A stretch of 64,000 nt of DNA, from contig CDRNST010000096.1 of the NCBI GenBank assembly GCA_977016875.1, positions 558,001 through 622,000 of the forward strand. Direction: 5' to 3'. The notes under the pieces were generated by a model, which saw only the letters and a list, made by a program, of their open reading frames with translations, did not search any database and was not told where the DNA came from. The DNA is from Pavona decussata (taxonomy: Eukaryota). Positions 46,678 to 58,185 of the stretch are shown in pieces. The translations under genes were made by a program, and so were the position numbers. Every line of letters begins with the position of its first letter. Positions within the stretch are counted from its first letter, which is position 1.

Positions 46678-49606
46678 ATGCCGGGTGGTGAATCGGAATC
46701 AAGTAGCAGAACGGAGTCGAGTGGTTCGGTGATGGTTTCGTTAGATGTGGGTTCGTTGGCGGCATTTGATACGAAAGGTGATCCGCACGGTTTGAGTCAA
46801 CGGTGGAGAAAGTGGAAGCGTTCATTCAAGTTATATCTTACCGGTAAGGGAGTTACGGACGACGCGCAAAAACGAGCTCTATTGTTGCATGCGGCGGGTG
46901 TTGACGTCCAAGAAATATATTTCACACTGGTCAGCGAGGACGAGATTACCACTTTCGAGGCCACGATGAAAGTGCTGGATGATTATTTTATCCCAAAGGC
47001 AAACATTCCTTTTGAGAGACATTTGTTCAGACAGATTGCACAGGAAATGAGCGAAACGGTTGATCAGTTCGTTTGCAGACTTCGCCAACGCGCAGCTAGC
47101 TGTGATTTCGGGGATAATGAGGACGACTATATTCGCGATCAAGTCATGGATAGGTGTCATTCGAGTGTTATCCGTCGCAAGTTTTTGGAAAAGGAGGGAG
47201 CGGTGAGTTTAGACGATTTGTTAAGGATTGCGAGGTCACAAGAGGCGGTCGATCGCCAGATGAAGGTGATGGGAACAAACGCGAGCGCCAATCAAGTGAA
47301 TGCAGTCGGTGGAAAGTCGAATATGAATAAACATTCTGCTAGAGTCAAGATATGTTTTGGTTGTGGTCAAGATGGTCATTTTCGTGGAGACAAGAAGTGT
47401 CCCGCGCGCGATCAAGCTTGTCAAAGGTGTGGTGGTATTGGGCATTTCATGGTTAGATGTCCACAGCTTCAAGGTCGTACTAGGGGTGAGTTTAGAGGTT
47501 CTACAAGTGGAGGCCCAGGTGTTACCGGTCGGGCCAGAGGTGCGGCTAGTGGAGGCGGAGGTCAAACCCGTGGAGGTAGAAGTACTGCTGGTGGAGGAAG
47601 ATTTAGACCTGGTAGAACGAGAGAAACAAACCAAGTGGTTGGCGGAGATGATGGTGAACAATTTACCGGACCAGTTCAGCAGAGTCCTGAGTATGCATTC
47701 TTGGTAGAACAATGCATCGACCAAGTGAAACAAGATAGTGGTTTGGTAACTCTGATCATCAGAGGAGTGGATTTAGTGGATGTCCTTATCGATTCAGGGG
47801 CTACTTGCAATGTGGTGAGTCAGCAAACCTGGGACTCGTTGAAGCAGAGAGGAATCAGGTGCGAGTCTCGCAAGTCAGCTAAGGCACTTTTTGCTTATGG
47901 TGGCACAGAACCATTACCAACTCTGGGCACTTTCACTGCAGATGTTATGCTCTCGGGCAGCAGTAATGGTTGTACGGCTGACTTCGTGGTTGTCAAGGGC
48001 AACGGGCGAACGCTGCTAGGTCGTGGAACGGCAGAGAAGCTTGGTGTCTTGCACATTGGTCCTTTCCAGGCAAACAATTTGAGCGGGCGAGCGGAGTGCG
48101 ACATCTGTGAGAGATACAGCAGTTTGTTTTCAGGCGTTGGTCTCTTAAAGGAGTATGAGCTGAAATTGCACACTGACGACACTGTGAGGCCTGTAGCACA
48201 GCATGTGCGTAGAATTCCGTTCGGGTTGCAGGAAAAGGTCGATAAGAAGCTTGACGAACTACTGGAGCTGGACATAATAGAAGAAGTACCAGAGGGGCCG
48301 TCTGGATGGGTTTCACCTTTGGTAGTTGTGCCTAAAGGAGACGGAGACGTGAGGGTCTGCGTGGACATGCGCCATGCAAATGAGGCGATTGTTCAAGAAC
48401 TGCATCCGATCCCAACGGTGGAGGAGCTTCTGCATGATTTAAACGGAAGTACCGTCTTCAGCAAAATTGATCTCAAGTGGGGTTTTCATCAGATTCTGCT
48501 CAGTGAAGAGAGTCGACACGTCACAACGTTTGTCACGCATCGCGGGCTTTACCGATACAAGCGGTTAATGTTTGGTGTGACATCAGCACCGGAGAAATAC
48601 CAACAAATTATCCGTGATGTTTTGAAGGGTTGTGCGGGAGTTGCGAACATTGCTGATGATCTCATTGTTCATGGCAAGGACATGGAGGAGCATGATGTAC
48701 GTTTGTTAGCAGTGCTTGGCAGGCTGAGTGAAGTGGGGCTGACTGTGAATAAAGACAAGTGCCAGTTTAGACTGACAAAGCTCACGTTCTTCGGTCATGA
48801 ACTGACAAGTAACGGGGTTAATCCAAGTGAAGAGAAAGTGGCTGCTATTAGAGACGCAAGACCTCCCAAGGACGCAAGTGAAGTTCGGTCTTTCATGGGT
48901 TTGGTCCAGTATTCAGCGAAGTTCATGCCAGACTTAGCATCCATAGCCAAGCCCATTCAGGAGTTGACCAGGAAGGGCGTTACGTTCAAGTGGGGTGCGG
49001 AACAGCTGAGATCATTTCAAGAGTTGAAGAAGCTGATTACACAAGCCGAGACACTGGCTTATTATCAGGTGGGCTGCAGGACAAGGATTGTTGCTGATGC
49101 GTCCCCAGTGGGGTTAGGGGCAGTTCTGACGCAACAGCAGGGAGGCGTGTGGAGAGTCATTTCCTATGCGTCCAGAAGCTTGTCTGATGTGGAATGTCGT
49201 TACGGTCAGACTGAAAAGGAAGCACTCGCATTGGTCTGGGCGTGCGAACGATTTAGCATGTACGTTACTGGTGAAACTTTTGAACTGGAAACAGATCACA
49301 AACCCTTAGAGCGCATATATTCGCGCACGTCAAAGCCTTGCGCCCGAATTGAGAGATGGGTGTTGCGCTTACAAGGATTCAACTTTACAGTGGTGTACTG
49401 ACCAGGAAAGACTAACATCGCTGATGCCTTATCCAGGTTAAACTCTGTGGAATCGTCTGACGGTGGCGGAAAGTACGACTTCGTCAAAACCATCGTAGAG
49501 AACAGTTTGCCTGTTGCTTTGTCACCGAGAGAAATTGAGGAGGCGTCCTACAAGGATGAGGAACTATGTCAAGTGAAGAACTGTGTACGTTTTGGTAACT
49601 GGAAAC
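46678..49606 (+). pseudogene. Gypsy gag-pol, 5' part (gag, two zinc knuckles, protease, RT, RNase H)
   Basis: 907-aa ORF with CFGC..H..C, CQRC..H..C, LIDSGA, IADDL, ADAS, EKEALA and TDHKPL; TGA at 49399 interrupts Y(R)PGKTNIADALSR; the frame continues to 49606. Confidence 0.93.
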
Positions 49607-50806
49607 CATAGCGTAGAATGGCTATTGTTCTTGTGACATTTACTTCCAGTTATATAGGTCTGTCATGACGCTTGTTATTATTCATAGATGCTCAAAAGGA
49701 GTGTATTCATTGGTTGTTATGAATGCGCGGTGATGCTCATTAGTCTGATGGAGGCGGCAAACTAAACAATGCAACCAGTGCACTATTGTTACCCTTTGTT
49801 TCGATGACCACAAACCGCTTTGAATAAACTCAGCCCACTGCTTTTGTTTTCTCGTTTGTTCTGCGACTGAGCCGCACACCGATGTATAATTATAAGTTTT
49901 CCCTTTCGTTACATTGAAAGTGAACTTAAGACTCCCCAACACTAGAAACAAAGCGCATTTTATAGTGCAGTAAATAAATTCGTTATTTTGCTGTAAGCAG
50001 TTTGCGCGCGCGGAAGCGACCAAGAAGTATAAATAACTCTTTCGATTCTGTTTTCAGATCTTTGTGACTTTCGTGTTACCAAAACAGCTGGTAATTTAAC
50101 GACAGTTGCCATATGCACGAACGCACAATCAGTATCGCTATCCCGATAGTCGATTTGATCTCGGCGAATCCAATCAAATTGTTTAATCGAACCCAAGCGA
50201 ACACCAATCTTTCCGGTACCGAACGGTCGATTATCAAGCTCAACGTTGGATTACCGAACGATCAAGATCACTCACAGTAAACAAAATATTCCATTTTGTT
50301 TTTTTTACCGAACGGAAACGAACACCAAAGATTAAAGAAATCTTAAAGGTTTTATGAAACTAATTCACCAGTGTTCCCGCCAAAACAACCTGAGCCAGCC
50401 AGCACCAAGGGCCAGTGTGGTTAGACTATGATCATGCGCGTATTTGCTCAACAAAATGGCGAAGCATTGAAGACCATATTTACTGTAATGTCCGTTCGCA
50501 TTTTTTTTTAAAGTAGTGGATACGTGTTTACAATCGATCGAGTTATGTCTGCAAAGGTAAGACCAAGCATTCAACTTCTTGGTTTCAATGTAGTATTCAC
50601 TTTTACCTATTACTTGGCTCACTGATCGATTCAAAATGATACTGTAATTAGCAAGCCGAAAGCCCACCATCTGAGATGTTTACTAGAGCAGTGTTCACTT
50701 GACTAGCGAAAGTAATTTGCGTTTTTAATTTAAAACTACTCTATCTCCCACAGTTATCCCTGCTGTACCTGGGCTCTAGAAGTAAACCACACATTTTTTT
50801 TCAGTT

Positions 50807-56229: not shown

Positions 56230-56872
56230 TGTGCGATCTGGTCGGCTGTTTAAATGAACCAGCTGGTACACTCGATTTTAAAATGCGCGGCAATTGTAAA
56301 TGATTTTACAACTGAATGGTTTTATGAATAAGTAATTATTTAGTCTTGGCAACCATTGTTATTCAGTCGAAGGCTTAAAACAATAGCTCACTCGCTCAAG
56401 ACGCGCCATTTTCAAACGCGAATCCAACCAGCAGTTTTCAAACTTAAAAGGACAGTGGTTCCCGATGACCAATTTGTAAACTTTTAACAGATTCTTGTCA
56501 AGAGAAGATCAATTTTCCATAAACCGTGCGTAGGTTTTCTAAAATCAGTATACTTTTTTAGAAATTTGCTTTTGAAAACGGCCTCCATACAAAAAAAGGC
56601 CAATTTTCCCTTATTTTCAAGTGCAAAAGGACAACCCTTCCACTTAATCAATCTTCTTTATTTTAGTCTTAAAATGCAGTTACAACATTCCTCTTCAAAT
56701 TGCCGCGCGTAGGTTTTTAGGTTAATCTTTTTTGAAAGCATGAAAGCGAGTTTTATCAACGCTACCGGGCCAATTTTCGCCCTTTCTTCTCTTATTCGGG
56801 GCTTTACAGAGCGCGTATTTCCGCTTCGCTGATCATGAATAGTTAATGAATGTCACGGCATTCTGCCCTATG

Positions 56873-58185
56873 GTTGTACACTCTCCTCGTACGTTCCTAT
56901 CAAGGACGAATTGTGTATTTATGGTGGAATTTTGCTTTGTGGTACTAGGATTGTAGTTCCCAGGATCCTACGGGACAAGGTCGTGAGATTGGCGCACGAA
57001 GGCCATCAGGGGATGGTTAAGACGAAATATCGACTTCGCAATAAAGTTTGGTGGCCGGGAATGGACAAGGACGCAGAAAAGGTGTGCAAGGTGTGCCATG
57101 GCTGTCAGGTTACGACCCACCTGAACCGATGTCTCGTGTGTTGCCTCCTACCGCCCCGTGGCAAGATTGTAGTGCAGACCTGCTAGGTCCCCTGCCGTCG
57201 GGAGAAAGTATTTTGGTGGTGGTTGATTATTTCAGCAGATTTCTGGAAGTGGCTATCTTGAAGTCTCCCACAAGCGCAAAGATTATTGAAGCGATCTCCC
57301 CGATGTTTGCGAGATTTGGTGTTCCGTTTTCCCTGAGGACAGATAATGGTCCCCAATTTGTGTCCGAGGAGTTCGAGACGTTTCTACGTAGTCATGGTGT
57401 TGAACATCGAAGGACTACTCCATTATGGCCACAGGCCAATGACAAGGTCGAGCGTCAGAATCGTTCTTTGCTCAAGTGTCTGCGCATCGCACATTTGGAG
57501 AAGAAGAACCTGCGCACTGAATTGGTAACATGGTTGACAGCGTACAGGTCTACCCCGCAGGTCACAACCGGGGCTACACCCTTCTCTTTGATGTTTGGAA
57601 GAGAGATGCAGTCCAAACTACCGGAACTAAGAAGAGAGACGGTGGACGTTTCACGGGAAGAAACACGCGGCAAAGACTGGTGGAGCAAGTTGAGAGGGAA
57701 GACATATGCGGACGACAAGAGGCGCCGTCCCTAAGTCAATCAGAGTCGGCGATGCAGTGCCTCTAAAAGCAGAAAAATCGAACAAGTTGTCAAGCAATTT
57801 TCATCCAAGTCCATTTAAGGTCGTTCAGAAGACCGGAAGTGAGGTAACTGTCAGGAATGACGTGGGAGTGGAGTTCAAGCGCAACACAGCGTTTGTCAAG
57901 AAATACAATGTACCGGAGGGTGCGTCCGAGTCCGTAACCAGTGATGGCGGTTGTTCAGCTGATCGTGAAGGAGATGGACAGGAGCCAGGGCCAGCAGAAA
58001 CAGTTAATCGTGAGGGAGACAGACAGGATCCAGAGCCAGCAGAAAGAGACAACGGACGAGATGAAGGACAAAATGGACCTAAACTACCAGAACCGGAAGT
58101 CCGCCCGAGTGTTGTTCGTAGGTCTACTCGCCAAGTCCAAAGACCTTCGCGGTTCAATGACTTCGTTTTATCATTAAGGAATTAG
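56873..58185 (+). pseudogene. Gypsy pol, 3' part (integrase: HHCC and rve), frameshifted
   Basis: AHEGHQG..CHGC, SADLLGP, TDNGPQF, VERQNRS, TPFSLMFGR; frame changes at ~57110 and ~57720. Confidence 0.92.

Follow-up and report, generated by a model that had tools for sequence, protein, structure and literature searches.

A Pavona decussata transposon with a RAG1-fold transposase whose insertions duplicate 0 or 1 bp of target

How does a DNA transposon enter a gene and leave no target-site duplication (TSD) behind? Each cut-and-paste superfamily is taken to have a fixed duplication length as its signature, by which elements are both classified and detected. The question is raised by a 7266-bp element from Pavona decussata that interrupts a Gypsy pol gene. 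It lies in the 64,000-nucleotide stretch of DNA analyzed here ('the window'; contig CDRNST010000096.1, positions 558,001 to 622,000, or C96:558001-622000, in an assembly of 602 Mb and 1180 contigs). There it occupies positions 49607-56872, begins with 5'-CAT, and finishes with ATG-3', as read directly from its junctions. An earlier model-made reading of the letters of this stretch (the sequence-only reading) had proposed TSD-free, blunt and possibly site-preferring integration by a RAG1-like enzyme. The element is probably an autonomous cut-and-paste transposon of an unnamed RAG1/Transib/EnSpm ('CMCT') lineage, whose ends are joined to the target 0 or 1 nucleotide apart. Element and flanks are laid out as follows:

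Positions 49447-49606, plus strand: left flank, Gypsy pol, whose frame runs to ...CVRFGNWK and one base into the following codon (open reading frame list, paralog translation).
Positions 49607-56872, minus strand: the whole autonomous element, 7266 bp, CAT...ATG (14 empty sites; 12 other copies, in which similarity stops at CAT/ATG).
Positions 56873-57180, plus strand: right flank, Gypsy pol continued, (R)CTLSSYVPIKDELCIYG...LAHEGHQGMVKTKYRLRNKVWWPGMDKD...CKVCHGCQ, the start of the integrase zinc finger (translation, colinear with paralog L063).

The left junction reads ...GGTAACTGGAAAC/CATAGCGTAGAATGGC... (a slash marks the point of joining), with the first base of the element at 49607; the right junction reads ...GGCATTCTGCCCTATG/GTTGTACACTC..., with the last base at 56872. 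When the 400 bp adjoining the element on its left were searched across the whole assembly, 14 further copies of the host Gypsy (L062-L075, 90-97% identity) proved to be uninterrupted at this site. In all 14 the left flank directly abuts the right: ...CTGGGAAC/GTTGTACAC..., that is, ...GGGAAC/GTTGTACA..., in frame. Since these paralogs read TGG(G/A)AACGTTGTACA, the insertion entailed a 0-bp duplication and a 0-bp deletion, and the sole difference between window and paralogs at the empty site is a G-to-A change, 4 nt from the junction. Translated through the site, paralog L063 continues in frame as ...VKNCVRSANWERCTLSSYVPIKDELCIYG...LAHEGHQG..., the stretch ahead of the integrase zinc finger, and the window resumes right after the element with CTLSSYVPIKDELCIYG...LAHEGHQG, colinear with L063. 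The comparison with other Gypsy copies that the sequence-only reading had proposed thus upholds two of its claims, that the insertion is TSD-free and that removal of the element restores the pol frame exactly. The host Gypsy copy (46678-49606 plus 56873-58185) is itself degenerate: upstream of the insertion a stop codon interrupts the frame at 49399-49401, and some 100 codons downstream there are several stops and frame changes.

The empty sites also settle where the element ends. They contain AACGTT, and they contain no CATG, which excludes both of the other placements that might be considered: the ends AACCATAG..CTATGGTT with an empty site of TGGAGTACA, kept as an alternative in the sequence-only reading, and an AT duplication in a CATG target.

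Other copies can be retrieved from the assembly with the terminal 300 bp of each end, and a 24-nt left-end pattern finds 14 intact left ends genome-wide (0 with the reversed pattern as control). Twelve copies of the window element's family possess both ends. Eight of these are non-autonomous derivatives of 1.64-1.66 kb, 1-3% diverged from their consensus; the others, besides the window copy, are a 2.5-kb copy and two shorter derivatives with deletions. In the assembly, the family seems to have no full-length coding copy other than that of the window, the copy on C334 being a 1.8-kb fragment of 98.8% identity. There is also a sister family, ~70% identical, with perfect CATCGCGCAGAATGCC termini and at least 139 ends, which contributes a further 32 two-ended copies. 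In all 44 two-ended copies (12 and 32) similarity ends exactly at CAT and ATG, and the bases beyond differ in every other copy. Three sister-family ends (C43:1795608, C195:1920779 and C49:6605370) have the flank AGCCAAC(C) in common, with a one-C difference at the junction, and four others share AA(G/A)NGAAT; such ends appear to have been amplified within larger repeats after insertion.

Is the window copy typical, then, in lacking a duplication? Consistent TSDs at other copies, the outcome that the sequence-only reading had named as adverse to it, did not turn up: a flanking direct repeat of 2 bp or more occurs in none of the 44 two-ended copies, and ~40% have a 1-bp duplication. A second 0-bp site could be verified for the copy at C233:68205, which lies in a satellite. 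More than 20 neighboring units read GGATTCTTACGTTT, and the insertion is flanked by GGATTGTTA/CGTTTT (TTA/CGT inside GGATTCTTACGTTT), an exact 0-bp insertion. The array around this copy (L005/L037, C233 ~68205-69855) consists of ~45-bp units (...GGTTAAGGATTCTTACGTTTTGGGGTTAG...) and extends for at least 1.5 kb on either side.

Not every insertion is of this kind. The bases that flank the 44 copies are identical in 26, complementary in 10 and otherwise in 8, and 26 of 44 is well above the 0.295 frequency of homodinucleotides in 359 kb of the assembly (P = 4.2e-5). This null takes account of runs of identical bases, not of composition alone, and the excess stayed significant against it. A mixture estimate puts insertions with a 1-bp duplication at ~42%, so that the outcome for the family is 0 or 1 bp, in a ratio of roughly 60:40.

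One of the 1-bp cases could be verified as well. The copy at C3:352557 (L007/L033) reads TTTTTAG/CAT...ATG/GAAAATGC, and its host repeat has 223 genomic matches to CTTAATTTTTA-N(0-3)-AAAATGC. Among 100 matches listed, ~89 read TTTTTAGAAAATGC; the others have A or T for G, or one extra A or T, and none has GG. Contigs of four public runs agree at this locus: compared with what a 0-bp junction predicts, every form that bridges the site has one letter fewer. Together, the lack of GG among the listed paralogs and the shorter bridging forms indicate that this insertion duplicated one G. The repeat that it entered (C3 ~352557-354195) is short and of very high copy number: in the four public runs its contig depth is ~50-100x that of the element, and the 223 matches are those of its 19-nt junction motif. 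No empty site was found for the copy on C27, whose flank is unique in the genome, and the empty-site pattern for the copy on C40 had no match in the genome. That the extra base derives from carry-over of P-nucleotides or of donor flank was considered and rejected, because it equals the neighboring target base far too often and because base composition at position -1 is flat.

The palindromic AAC/GTT at the window site, which the sequence-only reading took for a possibly preferred target, is not favored by the family. The flanks of 72 distinct ends, over positions -8 to -1 and set against local composition, show no sequence preference, with a relative entropy of 0.06 bits or less per position. 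Complementary flanks, such as the C...G of the window copy, occur in 10 of the 18 copies that lack identical ones, where ~5.6 would be expected; this marginal excess hints weakly, at most, at a two-fold symmetry of the target.

Relatives occur in other cnidarian material as well. Two copies from Nematostella (L091 and L092) have ends of CATTACCAAAAATCAGGGACA, with perfect terminal inverted repeats (TIRs) of 21 bp, and both are flanked by T...T. A coral-metagenome family with the ends CATAGCCAGAAATTCC is flanked by T...T at two loci, and a marine-metagenome family with the ends CATGGCGAACAATGC at one. Metagenome contigs with chimeric flank pairing were left out of these counts. All five two-ended copies lack a TSD of 2 bp or more, and from these five copies the CAT(N)GC terminus and the want of a conventional TSD look like properties of the whole lineage. 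One of the Nematostella copies (L091, in OW051987.1) harbors a nested insertion at 2017-6051 that encodes a DUF4371 / FAM200-ZBED5 RNase-like (hAT-type) protein.

What enzyme joins DNA in this way? The element encodes one recognizable gene, broken into exons:

Positions 51748-56277, minus strand: multi-exon transposase gene (stop-to-stop frames, tblastn of P0091 and P0054, invariant columns of alignment A1).
Positions 55527-55408, 54712-54200, 53882-53718, 53610-53527, 53405-52812, 52280-52113 and 51981-51820, minus strand: exon pieces colinear with residues 54-603 of the Nematostella protein P0091 (tblastn).

The minus-strand frames contain the motifs KISGDGAR (D1), LGGDYK (D2), FLLLAMGMKGATSNNSCIWC, IDELHLMLRVTD, TPYMHILVFHVP and GQGVEKKND (E); CIWC, IDELH and YMHILVFHVP are further motifs of these exons. 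Searches were made either with single exons of the window copy or with full-length database relatives. Pfam gave nothing useful with single transposase exons, and phmmer of two exons against the PDB found no match; single exons being uninformative, classification called for full-length relatives and a profile. A 110-aa exon (53157-53486, minus strand) matched 184 sequences, including near full-length proteins, among 1.84 billion representatives, and P0091 retrieved 168 relatives, all of them annotated as uncharacterized and none with a Pfam domain over the catalytic core. Every relative with a named source is anthozoan (Nematostella, Exaiptasia, Dendronephthya, Pocillopora, Acropora, Desmophyllum, Paramuricea and Actinostola), and a profile search of a 5.8-billion-protein set returned only close cnidarian relatives; the transposase lineage would seem to be confined mainly or only to cnidarians. 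In this genome, the transposase exon has more than 30 other matching loci, at 30-71% identity, from which the lineage is judged to be highly diversified here.

Aligned with one another, 24 of these proteins (alignment A1) share an invariant D203, D283 and E552, together with C302/C305 and H527/H532. In the window exons the DDE triad falls in KISGDGAR, LGGDYK and GVEKKND, and the C(2)C and H(4)H motifs are CIWC and HILVFH. Searched against the PDB, the A1 profile has as its top 16 matches RAG1 or amphioxus RAG1L (BbRAG1L) exclusively (E 8e-6 to 1e-3); the alignment covers two short blocks, and HzTransib is not among the sequence matches. The first block places GGD-K...C--C on the GYDEK...CTLC of RAG1, and the second places Y-H----HVP...G-E--N on YFHKTLAHVP...GNESGN, so that D2, CxxC, H(4)H and E align with their RAG1 counterparts (the catalytic D and E, CTLC and HKTLAH).

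An AlphaFold2 model from A1 has a mean pLDDT of 83, and when submitted to Foldseek it finds RAG1 at ranks 1-43 (E 4e-15, TM 0.55-0.64, ~580 columns), followed by BbRAGL (2e-11) and HzTransib (4e-10) and, far behind, by the P element transposase (2e-3). The RAG1-like character that the sequence-only reading ascribed to the enzyme is borne out, with a strong match in fold and a remote one in sequence. In the ESM Atlas the nearest models are clusters of uncharacterized Mucoromycota proteins (a few of them DUF1280), RAG1, arthropod RAG1_RNase_H proteins, which are probably Transib-like, and Plavaka; fungal models of the DUF1280 and Plavaka types are as near in structure as RAG1 and Transib. Matches to the Pfam models for RAG1 (best E 0.005) and DUF1280 are both below threshold.

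The N-terminus is another matter. The first exon, of 196 aa, contains no cysteine and so no Chapa/NZD zinc finger, and the N-terminal ~100 residues of the AlphaFold2 model are helices with a pLDDT mostly below 60. The corresponding regions of the relatives give only weak domain matches of coiled-coil type. In most of the 24 A1 members the N-terminus forms a coiled coil; six or seven finish with a weak SAP / Rho_N-like motif, and a single one carries DUF4806.

Outside of the transposase gene the element is non-coding. Neither a second gene nor a RAG2-like domain was found in it, and ten other open frames of 74 aa or more have no Pfam match. Its remaining features are these:

Positions 49607-49640, plus strand: left terminus, the 16-nt terminal repeat CATAGCGTAGAATGGC (49607-49622), a 10-nt spacer and an GTGACATT box (49633-49640) (direct reading).
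Positions 56849-56872, minus strand: right terminus, CATAGGGCAGAATGCC (56872-56857) followed without spacer by GTGACATT (56856-56849) (direct reading).
Positions 50807-51777, strand not applicable: internal direct duplication of ~485 bp, its two copies 93-98% identical, in the non-coding part (repeat search families D1-D4).

TRF found no tandem arrays in the element and did not report the ~485-bp duplication. The left terminal repeat is kept in all copies of the family, and the right terminus is likewise conserved. Lacking the spacer, the right end is 10 nt shorter than the left. This asymmetry, close to one helical turn, recalls 12/23 spacers.

How, then, might such an enzyme leave 0 or 1 bp? 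If RAG and Transib are a guide, it would nick at the 5'-CA end, and hairpins formed on the flanking DNA would release a blunt, 3'-OH-ended element. To go by the products, the paired ends would next attack target strands at positions directly opposite one another or 1 nt apart, against 5 nt in RAG and Transib. Host repair would have only to ligate, or to fill in a single nucleotide, and an offset so small with so little repair would leave no recognizable TSD. The 1.6-kb non-autonomous derivatives have been mobilized, too. Blunt integration, as put forward in the sequence-only reading, may hold for the 0-bp sites but not as a uniform rule, given the ~40% of 1-bp duplications; its chemistry is deduced from the products.

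Two other accounts would also fit the mixture of 0- and 1-bp outcomes. In the first, which we think unlikely, the transposase does no more than excise a blunt, signal-end-like fragment, and host non-homologous end joining ligates this into unrelated chromosomal breaks: blunt breaks would give 0 bp, and 1-nt 5' overhangs, once filled in, would give 1 bp. Variable 0/1-bp junctions and the lack of target preference would follow naturally, and blunt RAG signal ends are known to join precisely, as they do in V(D)J signal joints. When end joining repairs random breaks, however, variable deletions or filler are the usual result, whereas the three targets checked here are intact to the base and the ends are exact in 44 of 44 copies. 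The sister family's many ends, moreover, argue for an efficient, dedicated reaction.

In the second account, which strikes us as similarly improbable, the enzyme always makes a 1-nt stagger, and 0-bp products arise when the gap is processed differently, the unpaired base on one side being removed, for example, instead of filled. Identical flanks are indeed the largest class, and T...T surrounds all five of the copies from other cnidarian material, although the pairing of flanks in metagenome contigs is unreliable. Against this, some 58% of copies would need the alternative repair, and since both verified 0-bp sites neither lose nor gain bases, that repair would have to reach one precise outcome each time. 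Exact junctions and copy numbers favor a dedicated transposase reaction. That a conventional TSD is hidden somewhere, by ends misplaced in either of the ways discussed above or by a later exchange of flanks through recombination, is hardly credible: AAC/GTT does extend the inverted repeat, but at the window copy alone, and the idea is refuted by the empty sites, by the flanks of the other copies and by the satellite site, since neither an exact reading frame nor an exact satellite unit could be restored by flank exchange, which would be needed, besides, in all 44 copies.

The preferred account, of a CMCT-type transposase that itself joins the ends 0 or 1 nt apart, has weak points of its own. 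Empty-site references are available at three sites only, and all are paralogs rather than orthologous alleles. The stagger, the formation of hairpins and even the activity of the window copy are inferred. A single transposase would not usually give both 0 and 1 bp, and the mixture could reflect repair instead of the geometry of strand transfer. The similarity in sequence to RAG1 is remote, and the Pfam RAG1 model does not reach its threshold. And because the nearest predicted structures are uncharacterized fungal proteins, mechanism might not carry over from RAG.

Taken at its broadest, the proposal is that a lineage of RAG1-fold transposases, widespread among anthozoans, joins its ends to the target at positions opposite or 1 nt apart, without preference for sequence, which would be a geometry undescribed for RAG, Transib or any other CMCT element and, after Spy, the second independent origin of nearly TSD-less cut-and-paste transposition among eukaryotes. 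To this we would give an even chance. It matters for three reasons. The family will escape detection tools that depend on a TSD. A 5-bp stagger and a sharply bent target are central to structural models of transposition by RAG and Transib, and of how the reaction was tamed in vertebrates; a natural relative of the same fold that integrates at 0-1 nt offers a point of comparison for what sets the stagger. And corals and sea anemones turn out to have an abundant, uncharacterized transposase family, with no Pfam model, with copies that look intact and with non-autonomous derivatives that were mobilized recently.

Where does the family belong among known systems? The CMCT clade comprises EnSpm/CACTA, Mirage, Chapaev and Transib, along with Plavaka, ESTA and Lanisha (Kojima 2025, PMC12730594), characterized by the motifs C(2)C and H(3-4)H, by 5'-CA..TG-3' termini and, according to that paper, by TSDs of 2-5 bp. 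Our transposase has the DDE triad on an RNase H-like fold, together with C(2)C and H(4)H, and its structural neighbors include Plavaka, Transib-like and RAG1 clusters. The termini are CA..TG, too, and more narrowly CAT...ATG in the window family, in its sister and in the three families from other cnidarian material. It departs from the clade in its duplication, 0-1 bp with none of 2 bp or more in the 44 copies, and it could not be assigned to any of the named sublineages.

With Transib, RAG1 and the RAG-like (RAGL) proteins (mouse and zebrafish RAG1, BbRAG1L and HzTransib) it shares the overall fold over ~580 columns, DDE, C(2)C and H(4)H in the same order, and ends that begin with 5'-CA. The 10-nt difference in spacing of the subterminal boxes makes its termini asymmetric in a way reminiscent of 12/23 spacers. 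Unlike Transib and RAG, which make 5-bp TSDs, it makes 0-1 bp; and while the Transib heptamer is CACNNTG, the termini here are CATAGCG, CATCGCG and CATAGGG, with CA alone in common. Identity in sequence to Transib and RAG1 is just 14-16%, the match to the Pfam RAG1 model is below threshold, and the N-terminus is a coiled coil without Cys/His clusters. RAGL transposons encode both RAG1L and RAG2L; this element has no RAG2-like (kelch) gene. Chapaev is described as keeping an N-terminal Chapa/NZD zinc finger consistently (bioRxiv 10.64898/2026.01.24.700457), and the present family differs from Chapaev in having no such domain (NZD-like, two-zinc). Full-text literature searches, which did not extend to Repbase, turned up no Transib- or RAG-like element for which a TSD of 0-1 bp is reported, and a search for 1-bp TSDs likewise brought nothing relevant to light.

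The other comparison is with Spy, to our knowledge the only eukaryotic cut-and-paste group described as lacking TSDs. Spy belongs to the PHIS group, has an IS5/PIF-Harbinger-related transposase and enters a strict AAA/TTT target TSD-free (Han et al. 2014, PMC4122938), with neither duplication nor deletion of target, as paralogous empty sites attest (PMC4122938). The family described here differs from it in its RAG1-fold transposase, in its indifference to target sequence, and in the 1 bp duplicated at its third verified site and in ~40% of insertions overall. What the two have in common is that both are eukaryotic TIR/DDE cut-and-paste transposons; TSD-free insertion like that of Spy is seen at two of the three verified sites of the family described here.

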